Of a stretch of DNA of 64,000 nucleotides, positions 5,327 to 50,694 are shown piece by piece. The DNA lies in contig NIVC01001463.1 of the NCBI GenBank assembly GCA_002269645.1, forward strand, positions 62,001 through 126,000. The letters run 5' to 3'. The notes under the pieces were generated by a model. That model was given only the letters and a program-made list of their open reading frames with translations, had not been told where the DNA came from and made no database searches. Every line of letters begins with the position of its first letter. The first letter of the stretch is position 1. The stretch comes from Macrostomum lignano (taxonomy: Eukaryota). The translations under genes were made by a program, and so were the position numbers.

Positions 5327-5845
5327 ATGGAGGTTAACGAGAGTCTGGTCAGCACCCTGCTGTCCATGGGCTTCCCCGATGAGGGCGACATTCGCGAGGC
5401 TCTGCGCATCGCTAAAAATGACGTCTCCGAGGCCATCTCAGTGCTGGTGAATGACACTCGGCCAGCTGAAAATGTTAATAATTCAACTGGATTCCCATGC
5501 GATCTATCCTCGCCATCTATGGCCGTCGTTCCCATGGTAACGTCGACAACGGCTGTGGATGGCGGAGACCCCGGCGCGTCGCCATGCGTCGGCGAAGAGA
5601 TGCACATTGACGAGCCGGCCGCAGCAGCCGCCGGGTTCCCATTGGCCGCCCTATTAGAGCTGGAGGGCCGAACTTTCACAGAGAAATGGAGCATACCGTT
5701 CAAGCAGCACGAATCGCTTTGCGTGTGCATGCAGGCCTGCACCAGATTGGCTAGGGATCAGCTGCTTGAGGCCGAGGAGAATGCTACTCGGTTTATTAAT
5801 CGCGCATTGCCAGAGTGTTTTCAAAAACTGCTCAATAGTTCTCAG
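5327..5845 (+). CDS. USP24: USP24 exon 1 (UBA domain)
   Basis: ATG at 5327; [40 protein letters not shown]; donor CAG|GTAAAC at 5845/5846. Confidence 0.9.
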
Positions 5846-7027
5846 GTAAACGAGACTCAGATGTGAGATTCGTTTTGATACGTAGTGTATCTTGCTGGTA
5901 GGAGGTCCTTGAAAAGTCGATAATCTAGATGCTATTTTGCTAGATGCTATCCGGATGGCATCCGGAAATTAGTGTTACTATTATTCGGTGTGGACGTATA
6001 GAAAGTTGCACTTGCATGAGTTTGGTGTCATTTGAAAGCGGCAAGTCTCTTCTTTAAAATGACACCAATTGCAAGAGATTTGAATATGTGCTTCAAGAGA
6101 TATGGATAATTAAGTAGAGAAAGGTCGGTCATAGACTTACACAAGCTGTGTCTGCAGAAAACTTTATTAATCACTCCAAGAAAATCCAAACAACACAACA
6201 AAAGTACAGTAAAAAACAGGTGATAACAGGTGATAACAAGCAAAATTGTTATACAAGCGAACAACGTTAAAATCACTCATCGGTTGGCAGAGTTGTCTTC
6301 TAAACGTAGTCAACACCAGACATGACGCACTTCTCCCATCGGTCTCGCATCTTGTCAATGGCGTCTGCGTACAGAGTTCTCGGAATCTGGTGCAGCAGGA
6401 CCCTCCTAACCTCGCTCTCCAATTGATCGCGACTGTTATGGACTCAGCACAGCAACTGCAGTCTTAGTTTTCTGAGGCAGCCCCTCTTATTTAATGCATC
6501 AAATTTGGCCATAGACAGTTTATGCATGCGAGAAAAATCGATAAAAATTCAAGCTGAATGCTATTTTTAGCTCAAATTTTAGCTTGTGTAAGTCTATGAC
6601 CGACCTTTCTCTTCTTAATTATCCATATCTCTTGAAGCACATATTCAAATCTCTTGCAATTGGTGTCATTTTAAAGAAGAGACTTGCCGCTTTCAAATGA
6701 CACCAAACTCATGCAAGTGCAACTTTCCATACGTCCACAACGAGTAATAGTAACAATACTTTCCGGACGCCCCTCGTACAGTCAAATCGCTAGTGAATCC
6801 GCAGCCAGCGAAGAAGCAGGTTAATAGTAAGACAAAACTCAATATTATTTGCGACGCGTTTCGGCTAAAACTAGCCATCTTCAGGCACTATCGAACAGAA
6901 TTTATTTCAACTTATTAAATACTGTGTAGACGACAAAATCAGGTATTGAAAAGATAAAAGGACTAAAGGATCAATGTACAGTATAGCAATGTTCATAATA
7001 TTTTTTTGTGGAATGACAGGACAGAGA

Positions 7028-7113
<86 letters not shown>

Positions 7114-10100
7114 GCGTATGCGCCCCAAATGTACTCTAGCTTAGAACACCAACAGCCGTTCACTCGCACCTCCTCCAGATAGTTGGACATTGAGAATGGG
7201 TTTGTGTAACTTAATGTGCAGAGCTTCAAGAATGTTAAGTTTATGCTCATTTTTGCTGTTGTCTATGACCTTGAAATGAGAGGTTATGTCTGGCTCATCA
7301 CAACAACCATGGCATTGCAGCAAATGTTCCTGAATCGGAGAGTTTCGTTGTCTATGTTCCTTGGCTCTCGTGAGTAGGTGTCGCTTGGTTTTACCAATGT
7401 AGGTAATGCTCTGGTCAACAGAGCAACGAAAACGATAGATGACACCTGCCTTGAGAGCACATGGAACACGAGACTTTAAACTGCCAACGAATTGACTGAC
7501 TTTATGAGTACGGAACACTACATGAATCTTAGTCTTAAAGAATTTTTGGCAAGTTTTGCGAATTTGCCTCTTAAACACAATCGAAGAGTTGCCCAAAAAC
7601 GGAAGAGTCAAGATTGGTTCTCCTGGTTCTCTATCTGGCCGTTTAGGTTTAAGCTTTTTTTCAATTTTTTCATCTAAGAAATTACCAATAACCTTCATGA
7701 TGTAGTTAATAGGGTATCCATTGGCAGTGAGAATATTGATAATGTTGGTAAACTCGTTGTGCAGCAACGACCAAGAGCAACATACTGTATAGGCCCGATG
7801 AAGCAGACAACGAATGACTCCCGTCTTCCATTCCCTGGGGCACAACGCCTGGAAATTAAGCATCAAGTTAGTGAATGTGGGCTTGCGATACACTTCGGTC
7901 TCAATAGCGCAGTCCTTCAGATGGATCTCGATGTCAAGAAACGGAAGTTTCTTTCCACCATATTCCACGGTGAATTTAATGTTAGGATGGGTGGCGTTTA
8001 TTGTGTTGAGAAATTGCAGAAAGTCTTCCTCGTTATCAAAAATAGCGCAAGTGTCATCGACATACCGTTTGTAAAATTTCGGAGCACAGCTTTTTTCCAT
8101 CCAGGTTTTCTCCCAATGCGAAGCAGGTTAAGCCTCAGGTATTATAATACACAACATACATGCTCAAATTCGAAATTTTACCCGGCCGTGCGACTTACCT
8201 ACGAGAGAACCCCTAAAGCAAAAATTAACATTTTGGGTAAACAGGAGGAGTAACTATAACTATACTATTAAGACTAAATGCCTCGGCATCTAATTAGTAC
8301 TACCTCTGCATTTTGGGTCTGCGGTATTGCGACTACCCAGCCGAGTCGGCGGGGTGTTGGACACGTATGATACACAAGATAGACCCACTCACAATGTCAC
8401 AAGCGGGCAAGCGGAAGGCCAAACTGCTTATCGATCTTGCTGGAGGCTGTTGCGCCACCTTTTTTCTATCTTGCTCGATACACAGGCACACTGGATTTGA
8501 GTCTGTTGGTAGACAGGCAGAGACGATTGTTGCAGATGAAAAAATAAAAATCTTTTTGTATACCTTACTGTTTTGTTCAGGCAAAAGACAAATTTTGCTA
8601 CTGAATAAAAGTAGATGCGCGCAGGTTTTTTTTCGAGTGACGTATTTAGTTATTCTAGTATTTTATTTATCTTCTAATCCTTGCATTCTCAGGTAAATAC
8701 TTGGATGCACGACATTCAGGAGGGCATATTCGATATGCTCAACTTTCTAATCGAGCTCATAGCCGAGCGCTTAGGCTACACGCCAATGTGCTGCCAGCTG
8801 ATGGAACTGCTAGCCCTGGCGCTGAATCCCCAGACTGAATACCACAAACGGCACAAAGCCAAGAAGACCGATAAGAACTTCTGGAAGGATAAACTAAGAG
8901 AGAGTCTCAATTCTGAGCGGCTGTTCTCGTCTAGCTCAAACTTGAACTTGCACCGGGATCCCTACGGCTATTTGTGCCATCTCATTAACAAATTTGCCAG
9001 CTGTAAAGGCTTTGAAAGATTGCGCAATCTGTGCTCAGCTCCGGATGCCACTGTTAACGATCTGGCCTATGCACTGTTCCCGTTTGGCCTGTGCGCCGAG
9101 CAGGTTAGCACGGATACATTTCAAGATTATTTGAAAGCCGCCTGCGAACGCGCGTTGACTATGTGCACCAACCTGGGCAAGGACGATTTGAAACGGCGAG
9201 ATTTGCGCGTATTTCAGTTATTGTCCGGCGTGCGACTATTGTACCTGCGCTTCCGGGATAAGGAGGTGTCCGCGTGTGATCAGGTGGGGACTGCTTTCTG
9301 GTGGTACTCTTCAGTATTAGTTTGAAGCCTTGGAATCCAAAATCTCACCCCTCAGTGGTAGTTTGAAACCTTGCAATATCAAAATCTCACCCTTAATCGT
9401 ATTTTAAAGCCTTGCTATATCAAAATCTCACCCTCAGTGGTAGTTTGAAGCCTTGCAATATCAAAATCTCACCCTTAATCGTATTTTAAAGCCTTGCTAT
9501 ATCAAAATCTCACCCTCAGTGGTAGTTTGAAGCCTTGCAATATCAAAATCTCACCCTTATCGTATTTTAAAGCCTTGCTATATCAAAATCTCACCCTCAG
9601 TGGTAGTTTGAAGCCTTGCAATATCAAAATCTCACCCCTCAGTGGTAGTTTGAAGCCTTGCAATATCAAAATCTCACCCCTCAGTGGTAGTTTGAAGCCT
9701 TGCAATATCAAAATCTCACCCTCAGTGGTAGTTTGAAGCCTTGCAATATCAAAATCTCACCCCTTAATCGTATTTTAAAGCCTTGCTATATCAAAATCTC
9801 ACCCTCAGTGGTAGTTTGAAGCCTTGCAATATCAAAATCTCACCCTTAATCGTATTTTAAAGCCTTGCTATATCAAAATCTCACCCTCAGTGGTAGTTTG
9901 AAGCCTTGCAATATCAAAATCTCACCCTTATCGTATTTTAAAGCCTTGCTATATCAAAATCTCACCCTCAGTGGTAGTTTGAAGCCTTGCAATATCAAAA
10001 TCTCACCCCTCAGTGGTAGTTTGAAGCCTTGCAATATCAAAATCTCACCCCTCAGTGGTAGTTTGAAGCCTTGCAATATCAAAATCTCACCCCTCAGTGG

Positions 10101-13100
10101 TAGTTTGAAGCCTTGCAATATCAAAATCTCACCCTCAGTGGTAGTTTGAAGCCTTGCAATATCAAAATCTCACCCTCAGTGGTAGTTTGAAGCCTTGCAA
10201 TATCAAAATCTCACCCTTAATCGTATTTTAAAGCCTTGCTATATCAAAATCTCACCCTCAGTGGTAGTTTGAAGCCTTGCAATATCAAAATCTCACCCTC
10301 AGTGGTAGTTTAAAGCCTTGCAATATCAAAATCTCACCCTTCAGTGGTAGTTTGAAGCCTTTCCATATCAAAATCTCACCCCTCAGTGGCAGCTTGAAGC
10401 CTTGCAATATCAAAATCTCACCCTCAGTGATAGTTTGAAGCCTTGCAATATCAAAATCTCACCCTCAGTGGTAGTTTGAAGCCTTGCAATATCAAAATCT
10501 CACCCTCAGTGGTAGTTTGAAGCCTTGCAATATCAAAATCTCACCCCTTAATCGTATTTTAAAGCCTTGCAATATCAAAATCTCACCCTCAGTGGTAGTT
10601 TGAAGCCTTGCAATATCAAAATCTCACCCTCAGTGGTAGTTTAAAGCCTTGCAATATCAAAATCTCACCCTTCAGTGGTAGTTTGAAGCCTTGCAATATC
10701 AAAATCTCACCCCTTAATCGTAGTTTAAAGCCTTTCCATATCAAAATCCCACCCTCAGTGGTAGTTTAAAGCCTTTCCATATCAAAATCTCACCCTTTGT
10801 GTTATTTTGAGCCCTTCCATTCCCAAAATGTCAGTCCCATTTTTAATCTCAATCCTAATCCTGATAATGGCCTTATCAGTTCATGTTCCAAATCTGTAAT
10901 CTCCGGCGATTCTGTTATAACAAAGCAAGCCTTCGCTCCCACCCATCCAGGCCCGCACAAACCTGGTGCAAGCTATGCTAGGCAGCGGCCGGTTCAATAG
11001 TCGAATGAACGGCCTAAAGGAGCTTGGCTGCATGATGGCCACGGCTAAGGACCCCAGCTCGGCTAAGAAGCGTCAGAGCATCGGCCTGGAGCCGCTGCTC
11101 CAATGGATGCAAGAGAAAGAAGTTCTCAGCCTGGCTCTGGGCGACGGTCACTCACTAGACAATATGCAAATGTGCGACGGAGTGAAAGAGATTGTAGAAT
11201 TCATCGGGGCCAAGCTGTCAATGAGTGACGTCACCAAGCTGTGGCACATGGCGCACTCGTCGCCGGCTCTGTTCCCAGTGCTGGCCGCTGCCGCATCGCG
11301 CCTACCCGAGGACACCCTTGGCCACCTGTTGCAACTGGTTCAAGCCGATTGGAAAGCCGCCAAAGGCCGATCGGATAATTGGTCCAAACTAGTGGAATTA
11401 GTTGGCTTAGCAGCTAAAGAGAAGGCGCTGCAGATTCTGTGGGAGATGGCGCACGAGTCTGGCCTAGGTAGGCAGCAGATTGATTGCGTGTTGCAGCAAC
11501 ACCTGGCACTGTTGAAAGACTACGCAAAGGATAACCTGCGTCGGCAGTATCTCACCAAGTGTGTGGCTAATATCAAAGCTAAGCAGCTGGTCTATCCGTC
11601 TGTTAACTATCTGTACCAGCTCTGCTCTTCCTTGTCTAACGGCTATAAGAACGATGCTAAAAATACATTGAACGAATGGAACCAAGGCCACGAACTGGTA
11701 CTAGTGCTGGTTACGTCTATTAAAGATCATCAGCGCGATTGTTATAAACAATTTGGTCAGCATCTGTGCGCCATCTCGTCTCTAGATGGTAATTATACTC
11801 ACGAAGAGTATCTGCGACTACATTTGGATCTCATACACTACATTCTGAGGAATGCCGACCTGTATTTGACTAAAATTCGAGTGTTAGAGATGTGGACAGC
11901 GCTAATCTCGGGCGACAGTTCCACTGAGACCGATCGGGATGCCTTCTTTAATTGGTTGGTTCGATCGTTCGATGACTTGGAGGATAAGACTAGGAAGGAA
12001 CTGTTTGAGAACCATTTTCTGCAGTTGGATATTGCCAAGGTAAGTGTTAGCAGAGCCGTTCGTTAATTAACCGATTAGAAATCCTTAAATTAATGGATTA
12101 ACAGGTGTAAATTAAAGGAGTAACGATCCCTAAATTAACGGAGTAACAATCATGTTAATTAATGGATTTACAATCCCTAAATTAGCGGATTAACAATCCT
12201 GAAATTAACGGATTAAAAATCCTTTTAATTAACAGATCAACAATAATTTTTAATTACTGGATTAACAATCCCAAAATTAACGGATTAACAATCCCTAAAT
12301 TAACGGGTTAACAATTCCTAAATTAACGGATTAACAATCCCTAAATTAACGGATTAACAATCCCTAAATTAACGGATTAACAATCCCTAAATTAACGGAT
12401 TAACAATCCCTAAATTAACGGATTAACAATCCCTAAATTAACGGATTAACAATCCTTAAATTAACGGATGAACAGTCCTTAAATTAACGGGTTAACAATC
12501 CCTAAATTAACGGATGAACAGTCCTTAAATTAACGGGTTAACAATCCCTAAATTAACGGATGAACAGTCCTTAAATTAATGGGTTAAAAATCCCTAAATT
12601 AACGGATGAACAGTCCTTAAATTAACGGATTAACAATCCTTAAATTAACGGATGAACAGTCCTTAAATTAACGGGTTAACAATCCCTAAATTAACGGATG
12701 AACAGTCCTTAAATTAACGGGTTAACAATCCCTAAATTAACGGATTAACAATCCTTAAATTAATGGTGTCTCCGTTATCAGATCTTTCATGAAATTTTGG
12801 ATATGCTACTTACTATACTTCATCAGTAGTCTAATAAGCTCACATCAATTTCAATAAACTCTCCGCCCAGGTGACGCCAAATGGATTTTCCTGCTTCAAA
12901 TACTTCTTCGAGCGGATCAACCAAGCCGCCGGCAATCTGACCATTGTCCAGCCAACCTCGTTTAACTCGGAGCGCAAATTGACAGTTGAAAAACTCGAAC
13001 TATTCGGCTCGTCCTATCTGTGGTCATTGTACCTGCGCTCGGATCGGCCGGCCGTGTTCCGCGCGGCACTCGACTGCTTAATGGATTGTTATTATCGGTG

Positions 13101-16100
13101 CGTCAGCATTCGGCTTAAAGCGGGCTCGGCGGCTAACGAGTTGCACAAACGATTCTTAAACGACTGTTTCGGTCATTTGAACGATTCCGGCTCTAAAGGC
13201 ACTAGCGGCGTGCTTCGCCTATTAGAATTCTATTTGCAAACTGCCGAATCTGACTATCAGCACAAACGATTGAGGCCGTTGCACTGCGCCACCTATCCCG
13301 GCGAGGAGATGCAGCTCAGAGTCGACTGCGACAGGCCTAAACGGGCCGCTTTTCAATTGGCTGTGCACAGTCATCTAACGTTTGGCAAACTGCGCGAGGA
13401 ACTGGCTATTGCGCTTAATTGCGATTCCGCTTCTAGGTGAGGTGCTATGATATCTCTCTGTTGGATTCATGAACTCCAACCTGTCGGCTTTATCCCAATA
13501 TCACTTCCCTTTGATCTTGACCTGCCAATTCCGTGATCCCAAACCTGTCAGTCCCGTGATCCCAAACCTGTCAGTCCCGTGATCCGAAACCTGTCAGTCC
13601 CGTGATCCCAAACCTGTCAGTCCCGTGATCCCAAACCTGTCAGTCCCGTGATCCCAAACCTGTCAGTCCCGTGATCCCAAACCTGTCAGTCCCGTGATCC
13701 CAAATTTGTCAGTCCCGTGATCCCAAACCTGTCAGTCCCGTGATCCCAAACCTGTCAGTCCCGTGATCCCAAACCTGTCAGTCCCGTGATCCCAAACCTG
13801 TAAGTCCCGTGATCCCAAACCTGTCAGTCCCGTGATCCCAAACCTGTCAGTCCCGTGATCCCAAATTTGTCAGTCCCGTGATCCCAAATTTGTCAGTCCC
13901 GTGATCCCAAACCTGTCAGTCCCGTGATCCCAAACCTGTCAGTCCCATGATCCCAAACCTGTCAATCCCGTGTTCCCAAACCTGCCAAGTCCGATCCCAA
14001 ACCTGTAAATCCTGGTTAACATTCCCCATCTTGATACAGAGTCGGCCTAGCCGTAACAGTCGACGGCACCGAACGCCTACTAGGCGCTGTGCACGAATGG
14101 CGGCCTCTGTTCCTGCTCGGCCTGCGCCCAGACCCGACCCAGCCAGACAAGCCGATTGACGCCCACGCCAGACTGGCCGATGTCAAGTCTCCGTCTAGCG
14201 ACGCCTGTTCCGCTCTCGAACGGGCGCTGCCCAGCAATCTGCTGGCCGACGATTCGCGCACCTATCCGCTGTTGAAGCGCTGCCTACGACAGGTAAGTTA
14301 TTTTTAATTATATTATTATTATATAATTATTGTTATTACCTTAATTAATAAGATATTATTAGGTGTCTGGAACTCCCGTATGTCGGGGAATCCCTGATAA
14401 ATGTGCCGGGAAATCCCTGATAGTGTGTTGGGGAATCCCTGATAATGTGCCGGGGAATCTCTGATAATGTGTAAGGGAATCCCTGATGATAGGCCGAGGA
14501 ACCCCTGATGTGTAGGGGAATCCCGATAATGTGTCGGGGAATCCCGGATATTAAAAAACGCCTTTTAATAATTTCCAGGGCGTCTACGAAGCCGCTGCAG
14601 TGCTGGACCTGCTGCCCACCTGCCCCGATCCGGTGCTTGCAGACGATCTGTCCGCGGATTCGCCGCTGCTAACCTACTCTCTGCAGTGCCTGTTCTCCAT
14701 GCCCGAGTGCGCCGAGCAGCACGCGACCAGGCTGGTCCAATTGGCTCCGGAGCGGCTGACCCCGCGCCAGCTGTACCTGGTTGGCCACCTGGTATCCAAG
14801 TCTGTTAGCGCTTGCGATCCTCAGCAGCAGCGCCTTCCAGACGGATTGGCTGCCCATCTGTTGGCCTGCGCCGCGTCTCTGAGGTTTGACAGATTCATGT
14901 TTCATGATTTTTAATGGAATTTAGATCTTAAAGATCAGTAGCAATGCTTATTATGAGCATACCATCATGAGCAATCTAGGATATTAGTGTCAGCAACCCA
15001 TGAGTTTAGTGTGTCAGCAATCCCTGAGTTTTGTGTGTCAGCAATCCCTGAGTTTTGTGTGTCAGCAATCCCTGATGTTAGTGTATCAGCAATCCCTGAT
15101 GTTAGTGTATCAGCAATCCCTGAGTTTAGTGTATCAGCAATCCATGAGTTTAGTGTATCAGCAATCCCTGATGTTAGTGTGTCAGCAATCCCTGAGTTTA
15201 GTGTATCAGCAATCCCTGATGTTAGTGTGTCAGCAATCCCTGAGTTTAGTGTGTCAGCAATCCCTGAGTTTAGTGTATCAGCAATCCATGAGTTTAGTGT
15301 ATCAGCAATCCCTGATGTTAGTGTGTCAGCAATCCCTGAGTTTAGTGTATCAGCAATCCCTGATGTTAGTGTGTCAGCAATCCCTGAGTTTAGTGTGTCA
15401 GCAATCCCTGAATTTAGTGTGTCAGCAATCCCTGAGTTTAGTGTATCAGAAATCCATGAGTTTAGTGTATCAGCAATCCATGAGTTTAGTGTGTCAGCAA
15501 TCCCTGAGTTTATTGTGTCAGCAATCCCTGAGTTTAGTGTGTCAGCAATCCCTGAGTTTAGTGTATCAGCAATCCCTGATGTTAGTGTGTCAGCAATCCC
15601 TGAGTTTAGTGTATCAGCAATCCCTGATGTTAGTGTGTCAGCAATCCCTGAGTTTAGTGTGTCAGCAATCCCTGAGTTTAGTGTGTCAGCAATCCCTGAA
15701 TTTAGTGTGTCAGCAATCCCTGAGTTTAGTGTATCAGAAATCCATGAGTTTAGTGTATCAGCAATCCATGAGTTTAGTGTGTCAGCAATCCCTGAGTTTA
15801 TTGTGTCAGCAATCCCTGAGTTTAGTGTGTCAGCAATCCATGAGTTTAGTAAAGTGTCATCAATCCAGAATTTTAGTTTTCGTATTCCTTGATTGTTATT
15901 CCAATATTACTCTTCGATCGCACCCCCCGTAGAGACACCCGCGAGCCCGTCGGCCAGGCCGCCTGCGCCATCCTTCTCAACACCCTGTTCGGCTTGCCCG
16001 GCTTCCGTCCAGCTGACGTCGTTTCTCTGTCGGGCTTCCAATCCGCCCTGCTGGACCTGCTGGTTGCCTGTCCCAGTCAGCGGGTTCGCCAGACGCTCAG

Positions 16101-19100
16101 CCAGCTGCTGCTGCAGCGAGTCGCTACGCCCGACTGTCCGGAACTGGTGCCGACTCTGCACAGTCTGCTGGAGGGCCTGCCGCTGCCCTATTGGCATTCC
16201 AGCGTAACCGGGGTGCGGCAGGCCAGTCTGCATCTGCTCTGCAATTGCGCTGAGTATTTCGACTTGAGAGCGGCCCTGCTGTTGAGATCCGCTCCGCCTG
16301 CACAGGCTGAACTGGCTAAGTGAGTTAGTTATAGTGGCTGTCTGTCTGTGTGTCTGTCTATGTCTGTCTGTCTGTGTGTCTGTCTATGTCTGTCTGTCTG
16401 TCTGTCTTAGTGTCTATCTGTCTGTCTGTGTGTCTGTCTATGTCTGTCTGTCTGTGTGTCTGTCTATGTCTGTCTGTCTTTCTGTCTGTCTGCTGTCTGT
16501 CTGTCTGTCTTTTAGTGTATGTGTGTCTGTGTGTCTGTCTGTCTGTCTGTAGTCTGTCTGTCTGTCTTTCTGTCTGTCTGCTGTCTGTCTGTTTGTCTTA
16601 GTGTATGTGTGTCCATCTGTCTGTCTGTCTGTCTTTTAGTGTATGTGTGTCTGTCTGTCTGTCTGTCTGTCGCTGTCTGTCTGTCTTTCTGTCTGTCTGC
16701 TGTCTGTCTGTCTTTATGTCTGTCTGCTGTCTGTCTGTCTGTCTTTTAGTGTATGTGTGTCTGTCTGTCTGTCGTCTGTCTGTCTGTCTGTCTTTCTGTC
16801 TGTCTGTCTGTCTGCTGTCTGTCTGTCTGTCTTAGTGTATGTGTGTCTGTCTGTCTGTCTTGTCTGTGTGTCTCTTTTTTCTTTAGACGCAGGGGTTGTG
16901 TGCACCCTGGCGCAATTTAGGCGACATTGTCACACAACCGGCGAGAGGCATTACTTACTGCCCATTCCACAGACTCGTACGCAGTCTTAAGCACAGGCAC
17001 ACACTCACACAGGAGTGTACAGCGGCCCCAACTTTATTTACCAGGTATCGTTATTCATGTACACTTCACTGTGCTTTGGGGATTTGGCCTCAAGGCCGTT
17101 AATTTTACGAGAAAAACCCAAGTCGAGATTCCAATTCAGCCCCAAATTTATTTGACTGCACTTGGAATCGAGCCTGGGCCGCTGGCATGTCAGAGCGCCG
17201 CGCTAGACCACTGGGCTCCCCTTAAACTGTGTGTCTGTCCTCCTGTTTGTCTGTCGGACTGTTTATTTCATTTTGCTTTTTATTTTTTCTTTCTGATTAT
17301 CTAAACTCGCGCGCCAACTGCACTACTCACTCAGGCGAGTAGCCAGCGTGGAGCAGGACTGGCTAACCGGTTTTCAGCTAAGCCAGACAGCGGCCTGCCA
17401 GTGCCAGCAGGAGGAGGACGCCCTGCTAGCCGGTCACCTGCGCCTGCTGGCAGCGGCCTGGCAGGCGGATCCGCCCGACCCTTCGGCCGGCGAGCGGCTG
17501 CTGCCTCAGCTGATTGGCGCCTTCCTGATGCCGGCCGACTCGCACTGCCGTGCCGGGCCGCTGTCCCGGCCAGCCATCTACGACCTGCTATTGCAGCTGT
17601 GCGCCAACAATTGCCGATGCCTTCGAGCGCTTAGCTTGGCCCTGCGGCCGCTGCACCGAATTCACGGCTGGGAGGTGCCGGCGCCGCCCGAACCGCGCGG
17701 TCAATGCGGTTTAGTTGGCCTAAAAAATGGCGGCGCCACCTGCTATATGAATTCGGTGCTGCAACAGCTGTTTATGGTGCCAGGCCTGGCAGCTGCTGTA
17801 CTGTCAACGCCGGATCCTACTGCGACTGCTGGCGACGAGCAGAACACTGCGACGGCGGCAACGACTGTCGCTACCGCCGCCTCTGGCAGCTCCGTTGACG
17901 GCGGAGGCAGCAGCGAATCGGGCGACGGTGCCCTCTACCAGCTGCAGCTGGTGCTGGCGCACCTGTTGGAGCTGCAGCAGCAGTACTACGTGCCAGATCA
18001 ATTGTGGGCCAATTTCTCACTGTGGGGCGAGAAAGTCAATCCGAGAGAGCAGCAGGACGCGTTCGCGTTCTTTCAGGTACATCCTTGCGAATCGCCTTTA
18101 AATATGCTGCACCTACATAGCCCCACAAGAATTGCCCTGCATAGCCCCACAAGAATTGCCCTGCATAGCCCCACAAGAATTGCCCTGCATAGCCCCACAA
18201 GAATTGCCCTGCATAGCCCCACAAGAATTGCCCTGCATAGCCCCACAAGAATTGCCCTGCATAGCCCCACAAGAATCGCCTCCATAGCCCCACAAGAATC
18301 GCCTCCATAGCCCCCCACAAGAATCGCCTCCATAGCCCCCCACAAGAATCGCCTCCATAGCCCCCCACAAGAATCGCCTCCATAGCCCCACAAGAATCGC
18401 TCCTATCTTCGCTAATCGTCCCGAACCCCCAACAACCCAACAGGCGCTGATTGACCAAACAGACGAGCAGGCTAAGCGCCCCCTACTAAGCGCCTTCTTT
18501 CGCGGCCGATTCAAGCACCTGATCGAGAGCGAACAGTGCGAGCATCGCTGCGAACTTGAAGAAGATTTCTACGGCCTGCATCTGCCAGTTCAATCCGGCA
18601 GTCTGGAAGCCGCTCTGCACGCTTTTGTACGCGGAGAAACGATGCAAGCTGATAACGCCTATTCGTGCGAACGCTGCGGCAATCGGAAGGTCACAGCGCT
18701 CAGGCGAACTAGAATAGCCAGCCTGCCTCCGGTGCTGTGCTTTCATTTGAAACGATTCGACTACGATTGGCTGCGCGGCCAGCCGCTGAAATCCGATTTA
18801 TATTTTAGCTTTCCTAGGCAAGTGGAATTGGGGCCTTTTATGGCTAGCGCTGCTGGCGCGTCGAGCGGCGACAGCGCCTCAGACGGGCCGCAACAGCAGC
18901 AGCAGAAAGAGCAGGAGATGCAGGAGCAGCAGCAGCCGTCTAACTACAATTTAGTTGGTGTTGTTATTCATTCTGGCAAGGCCAGCGCTGGGCATTATTA
19001 TAGCCTAGTTCGGGAGCGTCGGCCCGGTGAGTTGGGCTAATTTTTTCAATGAGATTATCGATAAATATAGTTAATCCAATTGTGTTAACCATAAGTAGTA

Positions 19101-22100
19101 ATTTGTCCACCCAGAAAACTGGTAAATTAGTTAATCCATCTGGATTATCGATGAGTAGTTAATCCATCTGGGTTACCGATAAGTAGTTAATCCATCTGGA
19201 TTATTTATCAGTAGTTATTCCATCTGGATTATCGATGAGTAGTTAATCCTTCTGGATTATCGATAAGTAGTTAATCCTTCTGGATTATCGAGTTGTAGTT
19301 AATACATCTAGATTATCGATAAATAGTTAATCCATCTGGATTATCGACTAGTAGTTAATACATCTAGATTATCGATAAGTAGTTAATCCATCTGGATTAT
19401 CGATGAGTAGTTATTCCATCTGGATTATCGATGAGTATTTAATCCTTCTGGATTATCGATGAGTAGTTATTCTATCTGGATTATCGATGAGTAGTTAATC
19501 CTTCTGGATTATCGATAAGTAGTTAATCCTTCTGGATTATCGAGTTGTAGTTAATACATCTAGATTATCGATGAGTAGTTAATCCATCTGGATTATCGAG
19601 TTGTAGTTAATACATCTAGATTATCGATGAGTAGTTAATCCATCTGGATTATCGAGTTGTAGTTAATACATCTAGATTATCGATGAGTAGTTAATCCATC
19701 TGGATTATCGACTAGTAGTTAATGCATCTGGATTATCGAAGAGTAGTTAATCCATCTGGATTATTGATGAGTAGTTAATCCTTCTGTATTGTAGGAGTAG
19801 TTAATAATCCGTCTGATTATCATCAGTAACTGATTTATTTGGATTATTGATATGTAGTTTCCATTATGGATGTCTAAATCGTTCACTCATGAGGATTACT
19901 GATGTTTAGTGATAAACCTATAAGTAATTAATTCCCCTAGATAATCCATTTCGTTTCAATCCCGCCTGCAGGCAAGCCGGACGCCTGGTTCAAGATGAAC
20001 GACCAGACCATTGAGCAGATCGACCTCACCGACCAGCTGCTGGAATCCGAAGCCTTCGGCGGCACCTTCCAGAGCACGGAGAACTTTCTGCCGGAGGAGC
20101 GCAAGCGGTACTGGAGCGCCTATATGCTGTTTTACGAACGGGACAGCCCGTCGCAGTCGTCTCAACAGCAGTCCAGCGGTGGCACTCAGCCGCTTCTACT
20201 AGAAGATCCGGCGTCGCCGCCGCCGCCGCCACCGACGCCGAAGCAGCAGCAGAAGACGCCGATGAACAGGCGCAGCGGCGGCGGCAGCAGCTTTCGTCAT
20301 CAGCGGGACAGCATCGCCGAGTTGAGCGCCCTGGTGCAGCGAGGCGAACAGCGCGGCCTGTTCTCCGACGCTATGCCAGCGCACATTGCCGCCGCAGTGA
20401 GAGAGTCCAATCTCACCTTCTATCGGCAGACTGACCTGCTTAATGAGGCTCATTTTACCTTCATCCACCGGCTGTGCGAGTCCGTGCTGGATCGAGCAGC
20501 TCCGCCCAGCTCAGAGCAGCAGCAGGTTCAATCGGCCGCCTCATCGTCTGTTGCTTCAGCTGCCGTTGCCGCCTCGTCTCCGTCCGCTTCGGCGTCGGGC
20601 GGAGCCGGAGTTTTCACTCTGTCAGCGTCGCCGGCCACGTCGGCTCCCTTGGCTGCCGCGGCGGCGTCTTCGTCGAACTCGGAGCTGGCCGAGCAAGCCG
20701 CCGGCCTGCTGATGATGTTCCTATTCGAGGTGTTCCTGCGCACCGAGAAGCGCTTGCGCCAGCCACCGCAACTGAACGCCGCCTGGGACCGGCTGTTGAT
20801 GCGCCTGCTCACTGCCAGCCCGGCCCAGGCTAATGCCGCTTTCTTGGATTTCTTTTGCCAGGCCGGACACCTGGCTGAGCATCTCATCGTGTGCCCGATG
20901 CCTGAGCAGAGGAAAACTGTAGCCAGGCTTCTAGGTGGGACAGACTGTTATTGAACTGATTTGCAATTGCTCCTAACATGCCCTTTGAATAGCCCAATAT
21001 CATCCTCAGAGTCGCCCCTAAAATATCACTAAAAATCGTCCTTAAACTTCACTAAATATCGCCCCTAAGCCTCACTAAACATCACCCATAAGTAAGCGCC
21101 CACTAAAAATCGCTCCAAACCTCACTAAAAATCGTCCTTAAACTTCACTAAATATCGCCCCTAAGCCTCACTAAACATCACCCATAAGTAAGCGCCCACT
21201 AAAAATCGCTCCAAACCTCACTAAAAATCGCCTATAGATGTAACTAACGATCGCCCTTAAGCCTCACTTAAAATCGCCTATAGATGTAACTAACAATCGC
21301 CCCTAAGCCTCACTAAAAATCGCCTATAGATGTAACTACAGATCGCCCCTAAACCTTACTAAAATCGCCCCTAAAACCTCAAAAATTACCCCTAAAACCT
21401 AAAAACCGCCCCTAAACCTCCCTCCGCTCCGCAGGCGAGTCGCTTGACCTTCAAGTTCGCGCCAATCAAATCGGCGCTCCTCAGCTGCAGCAGTTCGTGG
21501 ATCACCTGCTCCATCAGTTGGGCACCGCGGCCAGCCATCTGGGCCAGTGCGGCGCCTTCTTTCAACTGCTCTGCGGCTTCGTTGACGAGCACCGACTGCG
21601 CGCCTGCTCAGTGCTGTACAGCCGGGATGCATTCGGCCGTCTGGCCGAGTTTCTGTTTCCAGAACAGCCGGACAGTCTCAAGCCGTTGAGCGCGCCCAGC
21701 TATCGAGAATTGGCTCCGCTGTATCGCCTGCTGTGCGCCCTGCCAACTTATTGCAGTTTCGCCCAGCAGCAACAGCAGCAGACTCTGCTACGCCTGTCGC
21801 CTAGTATGGAACGCTGGTTGCTAAGCGACTCGGAACGGAGCGCCGCCCTACTTGGCCAGCTGTGCGCCGCCGTGTGCGCCGATTCTGCCGGCCTCCTGCC
21901 AGCGATGAGCGGCCTGCTGCGGCACGCCTGCAATGCTAATATAATAGCCTCGCGCAATATGACTACCGCACTGCTAGCCCAGCTGGCTCACACGGCTGTT
22001 AACGAGCTGAGACCGCTGCTAGACCTGATGAAGGAGCTGTTCCTGATTCGCGACCAGCTGCAGTCCGACCGGCTCCGTCTGCTGCTCTACGGCGTTGAAA

Positions 22101-22722
22101 ATGTCGACGACACCGTCGTGTCCGACGGCGGCCTGCTCGGCTTGATCAGCTCCGGTGCTCACCTCGACCCCAGGCGGGCCTATCGCTGCGTTAAACTGCT
22201 AGTAGAGGCCAGCTCTCAGTGTCCGGACGTCCGAGAACGGATGCTAGACTGTCCGGACAGGTGGGCAGAGGGCTTAACGGTAGACTCGTAGGACCCTGGT
22301 TCGATTCCGAGCGCGGCCACATTCATTTGGGGCCATGAGGGTCAACTGTACACCCTGTGTGAGCAGTGGAATGGGCAGAATCGCCTATTATTATTGTTGT
22401 AATAGTTTATTATTATTATTACTACAGGTGGGCGGAAGCGGTGGCCGGACTGCAGGGCAAGCTGGACGCTGCGGCGGCTCCCACAGCCAAATCTACTAGC
22501 AACGAGACGGCGCTTAGCGGCCGCGGATTCCAGCGGACAACGTCGGCCCAGGCCACTCTGCAGATGGCGGCCGGCCTAGTTGGCACCGAGCGGGCCGCCG
22601 CTATTGCTGCCGCCTGTCAGGAGGACCAGATCATGGCCGACAGAGACGAGGCGGACGAGGCCGAGCCGCAGCGGCGGGTCGGAGAGTCGACCAGCCCAGG
22701 CAATTCGTCGCAGACGTTTTGA
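5327..22722 (+). CDS. USP24: Ubiquitin carboxyl-terminal hydrolase 24 (USP24/USP9X/FAF family, peptidase C19), 12 exons, 2372 aa
   Basis: Exons 5327-5845, 8693-9283, 10951-12039, 12871-13436, 14040-14292, 14579-14883, 15933-16319, 17335-18076, 18444-19026, 19972-20934, 21435-22260, 22428-22722. All introns are GT-AG, phases are consistent, total 7119 nt. N-terminal UBA (LLSMGF...[14 protein letters not shown]), WSIPFK motif, Cys box [17 protein letters not shown], His box [19 protein letters not shown]-terminal SNET...[14 protein letters not shown] plus NGGATC favours USP24 over USP9X. Confidence 0.93.
5952..6776 (-). mobile_element. Non-autonomous mariner derivative with ~190-bp terminal inverted repeats, in USP24 intron 1
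   Basis: 5958-6147 and 6581-6770 are near-identical inverted copies. The right end reads TA-CGAGGGGCGTCCGGAAAG on the minus strand (TA at 6777-6778), like irritans-type (Hsmar2-like) mariner ends. Interior 6440-6300 (-) encodes [46 protein letters not shown], a mariner transposase C-terminus. Confidence 0.72.
6825..8119 (-). mobile_element. 5'-truncated Penelope-like retroelement (RT C-terminal part + GIY-YIG endonuclease), in USP24 intron 1
   Basis: ORF 8100-7141: YKRYVDD RT motif, thumb ([15 protein letters not shown]), GIY-YIG (GVIYRFRC...[16 protein letters not shown]...LNILEALHI...LNVQ). Flanked by the 12-bp direct repeat GAAGCAGGTTAA at 6813-6824 and 8120-8131. (TC)n tract in the 3' UTR. 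Confidence 0.92.
6851..6888 (-). ncRNA. Minimal type I hammerhead ribozyme in the PLE 3' UTR/pLTR
   Basis: Minus strand UGC-CUGAAGA-U-GGCUA-GUUU-UAGCC-GAAA-CGCGUC-GCA: conserved core, 5-bp stem II, palindromic stem III (ACGCGU), GUC cleavage triplet, 3-bp stem I. Confidence 0.82.
9316..10800. repeat. 41-42-bp minisatellite, two variants (USP24 intron 2)
   Basis: Units CAGTGGTAGTTTGAAGCCTTGCAATATCAAAATCTCACCC and TTAATCGTATTTTAAAGCCTTGCTATATCAAAATCTCACCC, interspersed. Confidence 0.95.
12090..12765. repeat. 23-bp minisatellite (USP24 intron 3)
   Basis: Unit AATTAACGGATTAACAATCCCTA. Confidence 0.95.
13545..13990. repeat. 23-bp minisatellite (USP24 intron 4)
   Basis: Unit GTGATCCCAAACCTGTCAGTCCC. 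Confidence 0.95.
14375..14550. repeat. Degenerate ~22-bp minisatellite (USP24 intron 5)
   Basis: Unit approx GGGGAATCCCTGATAATGTGTC. Confidence 0.85.
14985..15850. repeat. 24-bp minisatellite (USP24 intron 6)
   Basis: Unit TCAGCAATCCCTGAGTTTAGTGTG; produces the spurious 301 and 310 aa ORFs. Confidence 0.95.
16335..16870. repeat. Degenerate (TCTG)n microsatellite (USP24 intron 7)
   Basis: TCTG/TGTC repeats with TTAGTGTATG interruptions. Confidence 0.95.
16895..17220 (-). mobile_element. tRNA-derived SINE copy A
   Basis: Minus strand begins GGGAGCCCAGTGGTCTAGCGCGG...GGCTCGATTCC (A/B-box-like), then AAATAAATTTGGGGC. Body GGGGCCGCTGTACACTCCTGTGTGAG...GTGGAATGGGCAG...GCGCCAGGGTGCA is shared with copies at 22.3, 27.0 and 62.3-62.8 kb. 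Confidence 0.7.
17335..18076 (+). CDS. USP24: USP24 exon 8 (catalytic Cys box)
   Basis: [23 protein letters not shown] ... [11 protein letters not shown]; acceptor tcag|g at 17334/17335, donor cag|gtac at 18076/18077. Confidence 0.93.
18113..18400. repeat. 23-24-bp minisatellite (USP24 intron 8)
   Basis: Unit CATAGCCCCACAAGAATTGCCCTG grading into CATAGCCCC(CC)ACAAGAATCGCCTC. Confidence 0.95.
18444..19026 (+). CDS. USP24: USP24 exon 9 (finger CxxC and His box)
   Basis: NAYSCERC...[16 protein letters not shown]...[25 protein letters not shown]. Confidence 0.93.
19125..19830. repeat. 28-bp minisatellite (USP24 intron 9)
   Basis: Unit GATTATCGATGAGTAGTTAATCCATCTG. Confidence 0.95.
21000..21425. 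repeat. Degenerate tandem repeat (USP24 intron 10)
   Basis: CCTCACTAAAAATCGCCCCTAA-like units with larger internal duplications. Confidence 0.85.
22267..22376 (+). mobile_element. tRNA-derived SINE copy B (internally deleted), filling USP24 intron 11
   Basis: GGCTTAACGGTAGAC...GGACCCTGGTTCGATTCC (B box), CACATTCATTTGGGGC, CTGTACACCCTGTGTGAG, GTGGAATGGGCAG; followed by an (ATT)n tract. Confidence 0.65.
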
Positions 22723-25756: not shown

Positions 25757-27450
25757 TTAAGAATGCATCGTCAATTGACCGTACCCTCTCGACTGTGACG
25801 CTGTCTGCTGCTGCTGATGCCTCAGACTTTCTGCCGCGGTCTGGCTCGAATCTGAACGCGGTCTTGCTCTCGCGTTGGTCACCGCGGTGGCCCGCAGGCC
25901 GGACGTCGGCCGGCTTGGATCCAGCAGTTGGCGGGCGAGGCGCATCTGCTGCAGCCGGCAGGTGACCAGCAGCCGGGCCGCGCGCCGGAACTTCCGCCCA
26001 GCCAAGCAGTAGAGCGGGCAGGTAGACGCGAAATTCGCTGTAAACGGCAGAAAGCTGATCAGCCAGAAGGTGTCGCGAAGGAGATTCCGCTCCGTTTGGC
26101 TGTCAGGCTCAATCAGCTCAGCGACTGTCGTCCACACGGTGCACACGGTCAGCAGCGAGGTGTTCACCAAGAAAGCGAAGGAGACGGCTACCAGACGGTA
26201 GGTGACGCCACGCTGGTGCCTGCGGTGCCGTTGACGATGTGGCTGGAGAGTGCGCATCAGCACAGCCTCCTCGCTGCTGCCCGGAGAAGCCGCGGTGGCG
26301 GTAGTGGTGACTGCGGCGTCGGCAGCGGTGGCAGCCGAGGCGGCCGCCCGCCCTCTGCGCAGAGTGCAGACGATGAGGCAGTTGCTGACGAGCACCAGAA
26401 GCCAGGGCGCCAGCGACTGCATCAGCAAGGAGACGTTGCGGCCAATGCGGAACAGCCGGTTGGCTCGGCAGAGGCCGGCGTCGTTGGGCTGGAGACCCGG
26501 GATGACGTAAGAGTTGACGGCCGCTGCAGTGGCCACCAGGCCGAGTAGCACCAGGCCGGAGCGCCAGCCTACCGCGGCGCCTTCGAAGCGCATTGGGCGC
26601 CAGACGGCCAGGCAGCGCTCCCAGGAGAACACGGCCACCGTCCAGGTGCTGACAGTCCGACAGACGAAGGTGGCGTAGAGGCGGGCGCGGCACAGGCTGA
26701 TCTGGCGGGTTCCGGCCTGCAGCCAGTCGACCTGCCAGCCCATCTGATGCAAATGACCCTCGAGCACTGCTCCAACCCAGATGGAGCTCAGCATGCTGAG
26801 CAGGGTGAGTGAGTCGCACACGGTCAGGGCGCACAGGTAGAAATGAGCAGTGCTGCGCAGTGCCGAGTTTTTGAGCAACACGAATGCTACGAAGTTGCCT
26901 AAGAGAAAATTAGTCGGTAAAATGTCCGGTGGACAATTTAATTGCAAATTCATCAAGTAACTTCAATTTACTTTAGGTTGTAAACAACCTGGCGCAACGC
27001 CTTCGGCGACATCGTCCCACACTACCAGCGCTGAGGCAACTCTGCCCATACTGTACGCAGGCGCGCACTCATGCACACGCTCACACAGGGTGTACAGCGG
27101 CCCTGACTGTCTAATCGTCAGGCATCAAATTACTTTACGAAATCAAAATTGCTTTTTTTACAAAAAGGATTTGCACTAACTTTTTTATCTAGCGTCGATG
27201 ACGAAACATTATAGACTTTAGTAGCAATAGTGTGAAAAAAACAAGTTAACGAACGCTACTGATAGTAGGTGGGAAGCAAATTATGTTGCAATTTTCACTC
27301 ACCAAAGAGGCCGAGTAGGACCACAATTGGCATACTGTAGGCGAGGAACGCTTGCAAAATTGGATAGGTCAACGTGCCCATGTACTTTTGCTGGACGTCC
27401 TCCATGGATACCGACGCATTGCTGCCATTAACGCTGAGATTGGTTGTCAT
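25757..27450 (-). CDS. Rhodopsin-class (class A) GPCR, neuropeptide-receptor-like (FMRFamide/myosuppressin-receptor-like), 2 exons, 429 aa
   Basis: Exon 1 27450-27303 is not in the ORF track (MTTNLSVNGSNASVS...YSMPIVVLLGLFG|, three N-glycosylation sequons, donor G|GTGAGT). Exon 2 is 26898-25757. TM1 GN, TM2 YLCALTVCD, TM3 C...WTVAVFSWERCLAV, TM7 NFASTCPLYCLAGRKFR; seven hydrophobic segments. Confidence 0.88.
26985..27118 (-). mobile_element. SINE body copy C (in GPCR intron)
   Basis: Reverse complement TAGACAGTCAGGGCCGCTGTACACCCTGTGTGAGCGTG...CAGCGCTGGT...ATGTCGCCGAAGGCGTTGCGCCAGG matches 62680-62823. Confidence 0.7.
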
Positions 27451-27529
27451 GGTGATTTACTTCGGTTGCTGGGGTGTTAGGAGCAGGCATTATGGCAGTT
27501 AAGATGAAATGCACTGTTATTACTGCCAC

Positions 27530-28054: not shown

Positions 28055-28272
28055 TGTCTGTCTTAGTGTGTCTGAGTGTCTGTCTTGTGGGTCTGAGTGT
28101 CTGTCTTAGTGTGTCTGAGTGTCTGTCTTGTGGGTCTGAGTGTCTGTCTTGTTTGTCTGAGTGTCTGTCTTGTGGGTCTTAGTGTCTGTCTTAGTGTGTC
28201 TGAGTGTCTGTCTCAGTGTGTCTGTCTGTCTTAGTGTGTCTTAGCGTCTGTCTTGTGGGTCTGAGTGTCTGT
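28055..28272. repeat. ~22-bp TGTCT-rich minisatellite interrupted by a LINE (resumes at 29939-29964)
   Basis: TGTCTGTCTTAGTGTGTCTGAG-like units on both sides of the element. Confidence 0.8.
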
Positions 28273-29938
28273 CGCGCCGCCACCCCCGCTGCCAGACAGT
28301 CTGACACTGCCGCCGGAGACGCCGTTGCCGGCAGAGGAGAGTTTCAGCGTAGCCCCAGTCAACGCAGCCGACGTTGTCAAGCTCGCCCAGCAGTCACCGG
28401 GCGGGAAAGCGCTGGGTCCGGACGAGGTGCCCATCGAGGCGCTGCGCATCCCCTGTGTGGCCGCTGAGGTCGCCAGAGTGATGAACCGCGTGCTCTTCGG
28501 TGAGGCGGCGCCCAACGAATGGACCACGACGCACATCGTCGCTGTTCCAAAGAAGCCGGACACCACTAGGCTTGAAGACCATCGAGGCATCTGCCTTCAG
28601 TCCTGTGCAGCGAAGCTGTTCAACCGGATGCTGCTTTCGCGGTTGCAGCCCGTGCTGGATCCGTACCTGCGCCCAGAGCAGAACGGGTTCCGGCCCCATC
28701 GCTGCACAGTGGCTCAGATCCTGGCTCTTCGCCGAGTCATCGAGGAGGCGCGGATTCGCCAGTCGATCCTGATTCTAATCTTTATTGATTTCAAGAAGGC
28801 ATTCGACTCGGTTGTCAGAGCCGTGCTTCCAATGGTGCTCCGCGCGTACAACGTGCCTGAGCATGCAGCTGATCTCCGCCATCATGGCGATGTACCGTGA
28901 TACGACAGCTGCTGTGACAACACCGGACGGTCTATCGGAGTCCTTTGAGACATCCTCCGGAGTGCTTCAGGGAGATACGCTGGCGCCGTTCCTCTTCGTC
29001 CTGGTGCTTGACTGGGTGCTGCGGACTGCTCTTCCTACCTAGCGGAATGTGCGACGCTCGCCTCCCCGCTGCGTTTTCGGACCGCCCTGCAGCTAAGCTC
29101 TTCCTACCAACGACGACGGCTTTCTGCTGCGGCGACGCGTGGGTCGACGTCAACCGGAGAAGCGGCTCAGCGTGCTTGGCTACGCCGACGACCTCGCCCT
29201 GCTGTCCTCGACCGTCGAGGGCGCCCAACGGCAGCTGGACAGGCTAGTTGCCGTTGCGGCGAGCGTCGGCCTGGTGGTCAACACGCAGAAGACCGTTGTG
29301 CTCTGCGTGCCGGACGACATCGAGGCTGCAATATTCTGCCGAGGCGCTGACGGGCAGGCGACCGAGCTCCCGCAATGTCAGCAGTTCGTCTACCTCGGCG
29401 GTCTGGTTCCAGACGCTCGCGAGGACCTGCGACGCCGCCGCGGGCTTGCCTCGGCTGCCTTTCGTTCTGTGAGGGCAGTCCTGCAGTCCGAGGCCCTACC
29501 GGACCGCCAGAGGGCTCTACAACGCCGAGACCTGGACGCTGACGGACTCACTCGAACAGCAAGTCGATGCGGCGCACGCTGGCCTGCGCCTTCAACATCG
29601 GCGTCGAGCGAGTCAACAACGCGGCACTCTATCGCCGCGCTGGCCTGCCACGTCCAAGCGATCTACTGCGCCGTCGGCGACTCCAGCTCGCAGGCCATCT
29701 CATCCGCGCCGAGTCGTACTGCCCACAGCCGGTGCAGGAGGTGCTGCTGCTCACGCTGCAGGCACCCTACCGGTGAGGTCAAGCGCGAACTCGGCGTTAC
29801 GTCGACTGTCTTGTGGCTGACGCCGGCGCCCCGGACACTGCCGGTGGTGCGGCCTTTGTTCGCGCCCAAGCCATGAAGCGCGCCCTGTGACGCTGACTTT
29901 TGCCATCCTGACAGCGTATTTTGTTGTTGTTGTTGTTG
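28273..29938 (+). mobile_element. 5'-truncated, inactivated non-LTR retrotransposon (RTE-group reverse transcriptase)
   Basis: Across frames: KALGPDEVP...IVAVPKK...HRGICL...EQNGFR...FIDFKKAFDSV...GVLQGDTLAPFLFVLVLD...YADDLALL...FVYLG...LYNAETWTL. Frameshifts, a stop and a small deletion; (TTG)n tail at 29922-29938. Confidence 0.9.
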
Positions 29939-32495: not shown

Positions 32496-33286
32496 AATCC
32501 ATCTACTTTTATCTCATCAGTTCGGAGTCCGGACGTGCAAAGCCGCACAGTCCAAAGTTTAGAGTGCATCCAACAACAGTCGCACCCCATATTTCCTGGC
32601 CGGCACGGGCGCCCGTCCCACCAATATATAATCGCTGCACTTCATTTCCAGCCCATGGGGGCAGCAGACAGCAACTGCTTCGACCTCGGCTCACGCAAAC
32701 ACATCTGATTTTTTTCAGTTCCTGCCGAAGCGGCTCAATCAGCAGCTGGCAGTCAGCGATTAGGCCGGGCAGCTCAGAGAGGATGGAGAGCAGCGGCGGC
32801 CGCCTGCAGTCGGAAAGTCGCCGCAAGAAATTGGGCTTTCTGTTCGGCCCTTCTCCTGATCGAATGATTGATTTGTTGATCCGCGCGCGAAGGGTTGGGA
32901 TATTTGTTCCCTCGCTTCTACTCCCCCTTATTTCTCTATCCTTCTGCCCTTCCTGGTCTCGAGATAAAAATCTGACTGACTCGCCTTAACTGCCTAGGAG
33001 AGACCCACGGAATATAAATCAGATCGGTACTGTTGGCGAATGGTCAAGGATGTGCTCTTACCTGCTTTGTATTTCTCTGAGCTCTACTTTACCGTCACCG
33101 CAGTCTATACTCTACCTTCCTCAGACTCTACTCTACCCTTAAACTTTTGACGGTGGCACAAAAGGTAGAATTGTCTATATTATAATATTTTATATTATAA
33201 TATATTTTATAACTATATTATATTTATGTTATAAAAAGTGTCTATATTATGGCTTTTATTAAGATCCCAGATGGAATTTTATTAGT

Positions 33287-33535
<249 letters not shown>

Positions 33536-49565: not shown

Positions 49566-50694
49566 TGGACTACAAGCTGATCAGTATAGAACAGCTAGGG
49601 CTGCAGAGAGACACAGTAGTACAACGAACAGAATGACCCAGCAAAGCCATATAACAAATAACGCATTGCAATAGCAAGCAGAAGTTCTGTAATCAATCGG
49701 GTTCCCTGTCGGACAGAGATTTTATCACTGTGAGGAAGCAATCAGCACTGTAGCACAAACAACTGGCTCAAATTATAAATATTTATCGGAGATATGCTTT
49801 CGCATTGGTATGATGAAAACTGAAAAAAAGGAATGCTATTTTCTAACTGCGAGTTTACATCTAACAGCACCTTGAACTTCGACCAACAACCAAGAGAGAG
49901 AGAATGAAGTGCGAGCTGATTTCCACTCGAATATTGGAATTCTGTGTGCAAAGTTAATGGCTTGGGGTTAGCGAGTATTGGGAGAGGTACAAATGGTTCG
50001 GGTGTAATGGGAAGCGAAATATAAATTGGAGTTTTTACATCTTCTATATGACTATTGCTGGGGCAGAATTCGCCACTTCAGTTGTGCCGCGTCAGTTAAG
50101 AACTGATAAGAGGAGATGAAGAGGAGGCTGGAAGATGGCGATCTTGGCGTAAACAGACAGCAATTTGGGAAATCTTTTATTACATATAGTTTTCGTCTAA
50201 GCTGGAATGATGGAAACTGCACAGGATAAAGTTCGTTGGGCAATTCCATCATTAACAACCTCATCGAACTCTTTATGGTTGGGTGTAGAGAGGTGAACGG
50301 CCGGAGTAACTTTGACAGTGTTTATATGGCGGATTGCCTCGCAATCTACGATAATTAGGCGTAAAGCAAAAGTCGCAATATCTGCTTTTATCAGTCAGGT
50401 CTGACACCTTCCTCCTATCCTGCCCTTCAGATTTCCGATTGATGATGAATGAATGAATCAGAGGTGACGCTGCGTCTGTTAAAGTTAACAGTTGTTGATG
50501 AACTCATTTGAGTCACGCCTGCAAATACAGGTCCGTGTGTGCTTAGTGATAAGAGAAGTTCTTAAGCAATCCGTGCGATCGGAACCAATTCTGGTTGCTG
50601 TAACTGTTTGCTTAACTTGTAGGCGGTGGAAGAAGATTAGGCAGGAAAAGATAGAGGAAAAGCTTGATGCTCAAGGACACAAATCGTTCCAGTG

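Follow-up and report, generated by a model that had tools for sequence, protein, structure and literature searches.

The splice sites and origin of intron 11

The origin of new spliceosomal introns in animals is still argued mainly from indirect cases, and the last intron of the USP24 gene of the flatworm Macrostomum lignano raises the question of whether a mobile element can become an intron simply by inserting into an exon. The gene lies in a 64-kb window (64,000 nt, the whole stretch of DNA analysed; all coordinates are those of the window). Intron 11 (22261-22427, plus strand; 167 bp, GT-AG, phase 2, AG|G) is a candidate insertion-born intron made up of 157 inserted bp and a 10-bp duplication. 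The best explanation of its structure, as yet unproven, is that it was probably born from a retroposon resembling a short interspersed element (SINE) that inserted at an AG|GT site; this reading rests on sequence comparison.

The central observation is an exact 10/10 direct repeat, ACAGGTGGGC, at both ends of the 167-bp GT...AG interval, at the positions given for it in the first-pass annotation of this DNA. The upstream copy (22257-22266, plus strand) divides into ACAG, which closes exon 11, and the donor GTGGGC; the downstream copy (22424-22433, plus strand) divides into the acceptor ACAG and GTGGGC, which opens exon 12 by completing an Arg codon, supplying Trp and beginning Ala. The repeat can be lengthened to 12/13 as ACAGGTGGGC[A/G]GA, i.e. 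13 bp with one mismatch. It was also correctly noted in the first-pass annotation that the donor GT comes from the first copy and the acceptor AG from the second, and that excision leaves a single copy and an open frame.

Exon 11 (21435-22260, plus strand; 826 bp) ends ...CCG GAC AG (Pro-Asp-Ar) in the gene model, and the final exon 12 (22428-22722, plus strand) encodes WAEAVAGL...SNE... and the stop. The predicted junction 22260|22428, GTCCGGACAG|GTGGGCGGAAGC, joins CCG GAC AG|G TGG GCG GAA to give ...CPDR|WAEAV..., open to the TGA at 22720-22722. Retention of the intron would add nine codons followed by a TAG at 22289-22291. Excision gives a gapless alignment with 16 USP24 relatives, in which the junction (R|W) falls directly before the near-invariant Trp of W-x-W-A-V-x-W-L, and the spliced frame retains the invariant S-N-E and F-Q-R-T-x-S-A-Q-x-T-L residues of the same alignment; in exon 12 the columns that do not vary across 17 USP24 relatives are preserved in this frame. 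The high-scoring tblastn segments of orthologue P0002 abut at the intron 11 junction, the match stopping at 22264 in exon 11 and restarting at 22426.

Junction identity and a second repeat at intron 1

The intron 11 junction repeat is far beyond chance. Junction identity across USP24 introns 1-11 runs 12, 4, 4, 2, 4, 2, 1, 4, 2, 3 and 10 bp, the baseline of 2-4 bp in real introns being raised by the splice-site consensus. Among the 1.25 million GT...AG pairs of the window with a spacing of 60-3000 bp, which served as background, the frequency of 10-13 bp of junction identity is 4e-5 and that of at least 10 bp 2.6e-4, the latter being inflated by tandem arrays. Conditioned on at least 4 bp of identity, the number of such junctions expected among the eleven introns is well below 0.1, and two are observed.

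The second of these is intron 1 (5846-8692, 2847 bp, phase 0, ...NSSQ|VNTWMH...), where an exact 12-bp repeat spans AG|GT at both junctions: TTCTCAGGTAAA stands at the donor (5839-5850, plus strand) and again at the acceptor (8686-8697, plus strand). The open frames that flank the intron are 191 and 210 codons long. This repeat of the same design adds weight to an insertion origin for intron 11, and no other AGGT-containing repeat of at least 9 bp with coding flanks was found in the window. The interior of intron 1 is composite, holding a Penelope-like element and an inverted repeat, and no founding element was recognised in it. The Penelope-like retroelement is 5'-truncated (Pfam GIY-YIG; ORF 7141-8100, minus strand), is nested in the intron, and has an exact 12-bp repeat of its own on either side, GAAGCAGGTTAA (6813-6824 and 8120-8131), in which CAGGT also occurs. 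The arms of the inverted repeat are 191 nt long (5957-6147 and 6581-6771), 96% complementary and separated by a 433-nt spacer; this structure may be a foldback or MITE-like element.

Repeat-family sequence within intron 11

The interior of intron 11 contains three segments of a dispersed repeat family. As had been reported from the first inspection, the family occurs three more times in the window, in copies designated A, B and C. The head segment (22294-22333, plus strand), found by BLAST, carries a B box, GGTTCGATTCC, and a conserved ATTTGGGGC; it is 87.5% identical to copy A at 62316-62355 (E=2e-7) and 77.5% identical to copy B at 17178-17139. The B box claimed for this head is indeed present, as a perfect match at 22298-22308. 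The core segment CTGTACACCCTGTGTGAGC (22346-22368, plus strand), detected by BLAST and in alignment A3, is 95.7% identical to 62696-62717 in copy A and to 27097-27076 in copy C (E=2e-4 each). The third segment, GGAATGGGCAGAATCGCC (22368-22385, plus strand), is seen in alignment A3 only and is colinear with the family past an internal gap of ~40 nt. All three segments lie on the sense strand and in family order.

The segments are followed by an AT-rich (ATT)n tail of 38 nt (22386-22423, plus strand), the tract recorded in the first-pass annotation, which abuts the second repeat copy and stands in place of the family's 3' ~80 nt. The tail likely serves as the pyrimidine and branch region of the intron. 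With the AATCGCC just before it, the tail makes up two units of ~22 nt with 80% identity (22379-22420), which suggests a small tandem duplication. Weak snoRNA-like Rfam matches on the tail were dismissed as noise. Neither a separate internal target-site duplication nor terminal inverted repeats were found within the insert. An 8-mer, TGGGCAGA, that occurs at 22262-22269 and 22372-22379 was considered as such a duplication and rejected: its second copy is conserved family sequence, and ~0.08 such matches are expected.

Comparison with USP24 of other animals

In the fish Goodea and Albula the stretch (K)CPPAKDYFKxLSxHWSWAVQWLQKK comes from a single uninterrupted USP24 exon; relative to the site of intron 11, introns lie 13 codons before and 11 codons after, and none falls at H|W. 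Conservation of this intron position in distant USP24 genes, which the first-pass annotation took as the observation that would refute birth by SINE insertion, was not found in the one distant outgroup compared, these two fish. The last ~440 codons of fish USP24 are split into about a dozen exons, and the flatworm exon 11 (826 bp) covers the equivalent of about seven fish exons; ancestral introns have therefore been lost here, and intron 11 lies at a new position. The absence of intron 11 from fish is consistent with gain but does not discriminate.

Queried with the C-terminal region and with a 366-aa exon, the protein word index yielded no other USP24 copy and no flatworm orthologue, the sole match being P0001, discussed below with the gene model. 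An orthologue profile used as query retrieved nine proteins, most of them fragments from vertebrates, and no flatworm sequence.

Insertion of a retroposon and alternative origins

According to the favoured reading a non-autonomous SINE-like retroposon with a pol III B box would have entered the last coding exon, in sense orientation, at ACAG^GTGGGC; the uninterrupted exon before the event would have read ...GGACAGGTGGGCGG.... A staggered target cut, filled after insertion, would have duplicated 10 bp (possibly 13). Because the duplicated stretch contains AG|GT, both splice sites could come from the duplication, the upstream copy giving the donor ACAG|GTGGGC and the downstream copy the acceptor ACAG|G, while the element's AT-rich tail would have furnished the pyrimidine and branch region. 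The spliceosome would then take out the insert together with one repeat copy and leave the coding sequence unchanged. Insertion was presumably by target-primed reverse transcription. Retroposition is favoured by the length of the duplication (10-13 bp), by the sense-oriented AT-rich tail directly before the downstream copy, and by the resemblance of the other family copies to retroposons, with 5' truncation (copy C) and flank repeats of 12/13 and 11/13.

A number of observations weigh against this origin. Splicing of intron 11 is itself deduced from sequence, and the comparison loci are those of two fish only. Intron 10 likewise has no fish counterpart and shows no junction repeat, so that absence from fish is a weak discriminator in a gene whose introns have been remodelled. 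The putative 5' end of the element (22267-22293, plus strand) is a stretch of 27 nt without significant match to the other copies, in which there is a weak A-box-like GGGCTTAACGG (8/11 including Ns, by eye); in semi-global alignment against shuffles it gives p=0.13 with copy A and p=0.65 with copy B. The 5' parts of copies A and B are also dissimilar to each other (p=0.8), and the 5' boundary of the intron 11 element is therefore unanchored rather than contradicted. Detectable family homology starts at 22294, i.e. 33 nt into the intron and 28 nt past the repeat, and no more than ~80 nt of the 157-bp insert can be matched to the family. The 3' ~80 nt of the family are absent from intron 11, which is unusual for a target-primed insertion because such an insertion starts at the 3' end; the internal deletions and the missing 3' module presumably go back to the source element or to changes that followed insertion. 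Finally, the family heads were not recognised as tRNA, ARAGORN reporting 0 genes and Rfam no match either at its gathering threshold or at E<=10 on three heads. The description of the head as tRNA-like in the first-pass annotation was accordingly not borne out by tRNA models (ARAGORN none, Rfam tRNA no match at E<=10), and since these models fail on the heads the term SINE rests on the B box, dispersal and flank repeats.

The earlier proposal of a SINE-created intron is thus upheld in its repeat, its colinear sense interior, its AT-rich tail and its restored frame, and is weakened at the two ends of the element, where the 5' 27 nt are unanchored and the 3' ~80 nt missing; its own caveat, that the copy is internally deleted and lacks the family's 3' segment, proved correct. 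Colinearity from the head onward, which it put forward for testing, holds for three ordered pieces on the same strand and not for the first 27 nt. As to the opposite outcome that it had envisaged, homology beginning well inside the intron with a target-site duplication of its own, the homology begins 33 nt inside and no such duplication was found.

The patchwork nature of the insert is also what would be expected if a staggered break in the exon had been end-joined with SINE-like filler, the fill-in of the overhangs leaving the 10-bp repeat with no retrotransposition involved; an AGGT-duplication intron would result all the same. The insert is in fact a mosaic of three non-contiguous family pieces with unmatched or deleted stretches between them and no 3' module, and short direct repeats at new introns are the signature described in Daphnia (PMC3443670). 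Such double-strand-break repair is nevertheless an unlikely origin: the pieces keep the native order and orientation of the family, endonuclease-initiated retroposition typically gives a 10-13-bp stagger and an AT-rich 3' tail next to the repeat, and comparable flank repeats occur on other family copies. The position of the homology, which begins 33 nt inside the intron and stops 42 nt before its end, would equally suit an older, ordinary short intron that later gained a SINE fragment, as copies B and C, which do lie within ordinary introns, illustrate; the 10-bp identity would then be a coincidence helped by the splice-site consensus. A coincidence of this kind has a chance of about 4e-5, however, the homologous part has no separate flanking duplication, the same architecture is found in a second intron (intron 1), and fish have no intron at the position, so that this history is judged quite improbable.

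A third possibility is that intron 11 is not spliced at all, and that the insertion has recently disabled one allele or homeologue in a genome that is polyploid-derived and partly redundant, with AGGT present by luck, as by our estimate it would be in ~3% of random 10-mers. This is very unlikely, for the element has diverged from the other copies and lost internal parts, yet the 97 downstream codons, read in the spliced frame, keep all the invariant orthologue residues, and the other eleven exons are all intact. Three further mechanisms were ruled out: tandem duplication of exon sequence, as the interior is not exon-like; a DNA transposon, as there are no terminal inverted repeats; and intron transposition by reverse splicing, as this leaves no target duplication.

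The SINE-like family in the window

With the intron 11 copy there are four family copies within the 64 kb. Copy A (about 62277-62860, plus strand) consists of the head, an internal (GACA)n array, the core, the 3' part and a (TTTA)n tail. Copy B (16885-17222, minus strand) has the most complete head and lies antisense within USP24 intron 7. Copy C (26985-27124, minus strand) retains only the core and 3' part, and lies in an intron of a GPCR-like gene (25757-27460, minus strand). Flank repeats amount to 10/10 for the intron 11 copy, 12/13 for copy C, as TAAAGTAA(T/A)TTGA, and 11/13 for copy A. By the standard of introners, mobile elements that themselves form introns, the family falls short within the window, since copies B and C are inside larger introns and a junction-repeat scan found no intron delimited at A.

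The window contains four occurrences of the B-box motif GGYTCGATTCC, as compared to 0.03 expected; the fourth occurrence belongs to a different tRNA-SINE-like repeat at ~50640-50790 (minus strand) that bears the same B box GGTTCGATTCC (50701-50711) and is otherwise unrelated in sequence to the intron 11 family. Searches of metagenome and GTDB genome collections with the SINE head pattern gave 0 matches. Long (GACA)n arrays are present at 16330-16880, 62394-62660 and 33285-33530, two of which adjoin or lie within copies B and A; this suggests that the family carries or attracts the (GACA)n microsatellite. Non-LTR reverse-transcriptase ORFs (Pfam RVT_1) are found at 28265-29876 (plus strand) and might mobilise the SINE-like family.

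The USP24 gene and its protein

The rebuilt gene model places the USP24 coding sequence at 5327-22722 (plus strand) in 12 exons and 11 GT-AG introns, so that the flagged intron is the last and the number 11 given to it at the outset is right. The ORF is intact and encodes an uninterrupted protein of 2372 aa with an N-terminal UBA domain (Pfam 2.9e-8) and a UCH catalytic domain (Pfam 5e-48), colinear over its whole length with relatives of about 2450-2580 aa. The gene is identified as USP24 from one fish relative so named by NCBI and from the presence of the UBA, the UCH and the USP24-type C-terminal region together. Only 11 introns interrupt the 2372 codons, the largest exons reaching 1089 bp. 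Tandem arrays fill most of the introns (e.g. 13510-13990, 14987-15892, 18100-18400 and 21026-21420). Two exact 14-bp matches between exons, 14601-14614 with 16049-16062 (TGCTGGACCTGCTG, encoding LLDLL..CP in both) and 9238-9251 with 13026-13039 (ATTGTACCTGCGCT), could be chance or an internal protein repeat.

The sole protein match to the 366-aa USP24 exon in the word-index search is UniRef A0A1I8FIP6 (P0001), from M. lignano, which is described in the public record as Alba domain-containing. In this entry 311 of 411 residues lie in exact matches of at least 8 aa to the plus strand of the window, colinear over 9002-14881 and hopping between frames. A0A1I8FIP6 is a frame-shifted model that pieces together USP24 exons and out-of-frame parts of the same locus, a mis-annotation from an error-prone assembly.

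Intron gain by mobile elements

The mechanism proposed for intron 11 is already known, and the intron offers a clean, though unproven, case in an animal of a route of intron gain that had been proposed before. Insertion at an AGGT proto-splice site was modelled by Yenerall & Zhou 2012 (PMC3443670, Fig. 1b) with cases from Oryza, Drosophila, Oikopleura and Zea, and 35 indirect cases of AGGT duplication were on record by 2012 (PMC3443670). Tens of thousands of introns born from transposons are by now catalogued, in hundreds of species (PMC9860276, PMC12130899). The description of this route in the first-pass annotation as rarely documented therefore needs qualification: the AGGT-duplication model is standard in reviews, while retroposon-born introns in animals are uncommon. 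Intron 11 resembles the AGGT cases in that a duplication places AGGT on both sides of the element, donor and acceptor come from separate copies and the coding sequence is kept; it differs in involving a flatworm and a SINE-like retroposon, in the internal deletion of the copy, and in element ends placed without a consensus.

Introners have been described in Micromonas, Aureococcus, dinoflagellates, fungi and tunicates (Gozashti et al. 2022 PMC9860276; 2025 PMC12130899; review PMC11282704), ~82% of them being DNA transposons with terminal inverted repeats and ~5% non-LTR retroelements, and they usually carry one splice site (PMC9860276, PMC12130899, PMC11282704). As in introners, a mobile element appears to have become an intron on insertion, with the target-site duplication contributing splice-site bases; unlike introners, which make many introns, there is one such copy in the window and both splice sites would derive from the duplication. 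A term search found no mention of flatworms in the main texts of the two introner surveys (PMC9860276, PMC12130899). New introns of the Daphnia type (PMC3443670) share with intron 11 a short direct repeat at both ends of a lineage-specific intron, but in M. lignano the interior is recognisable as mobile-element sequence in its native order, and the repeat, at 10-13 bp, is the longer one. With tRNA-derived SINEs the M. lignano family shares a perfect B box, dispersed and diverged copies, 5' truncation and flank repeats of variable length; it differs from them in heads unrecognised as tRNA, 5' parts that cannot be aligned with one another and heterogeneous 3' tails.

Intron 11 is of use as an example of textbook grade, in that the retroposon, the target duplication and both splice sites are legible in one intron of 167 bp. 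Because M. lignano is amenable to laboratory culture and transgenesis, the step from insertion to intron is directly testable in this animal. If the intron 1 repeat reflects a genome-wide pattern, transposon-driven intron gain would extend to flatworms, and also to retroelements whose duplication alone supplies both splice sites. That insertion of mobile elements at AG|GT is a recurrent and possibly ongoing source of introns in M. lignano is a tentative and at present doubtful extension, put forward because introns 1 and 11 (two of the eleven) bear exact junction duplications of 12 and 10 bp in a gene from which almost all ancestral introns have disappeared. Were it true, retroelements would be driving intron gain of an introner-like kind in an animal, this repeat-rich flatworm.

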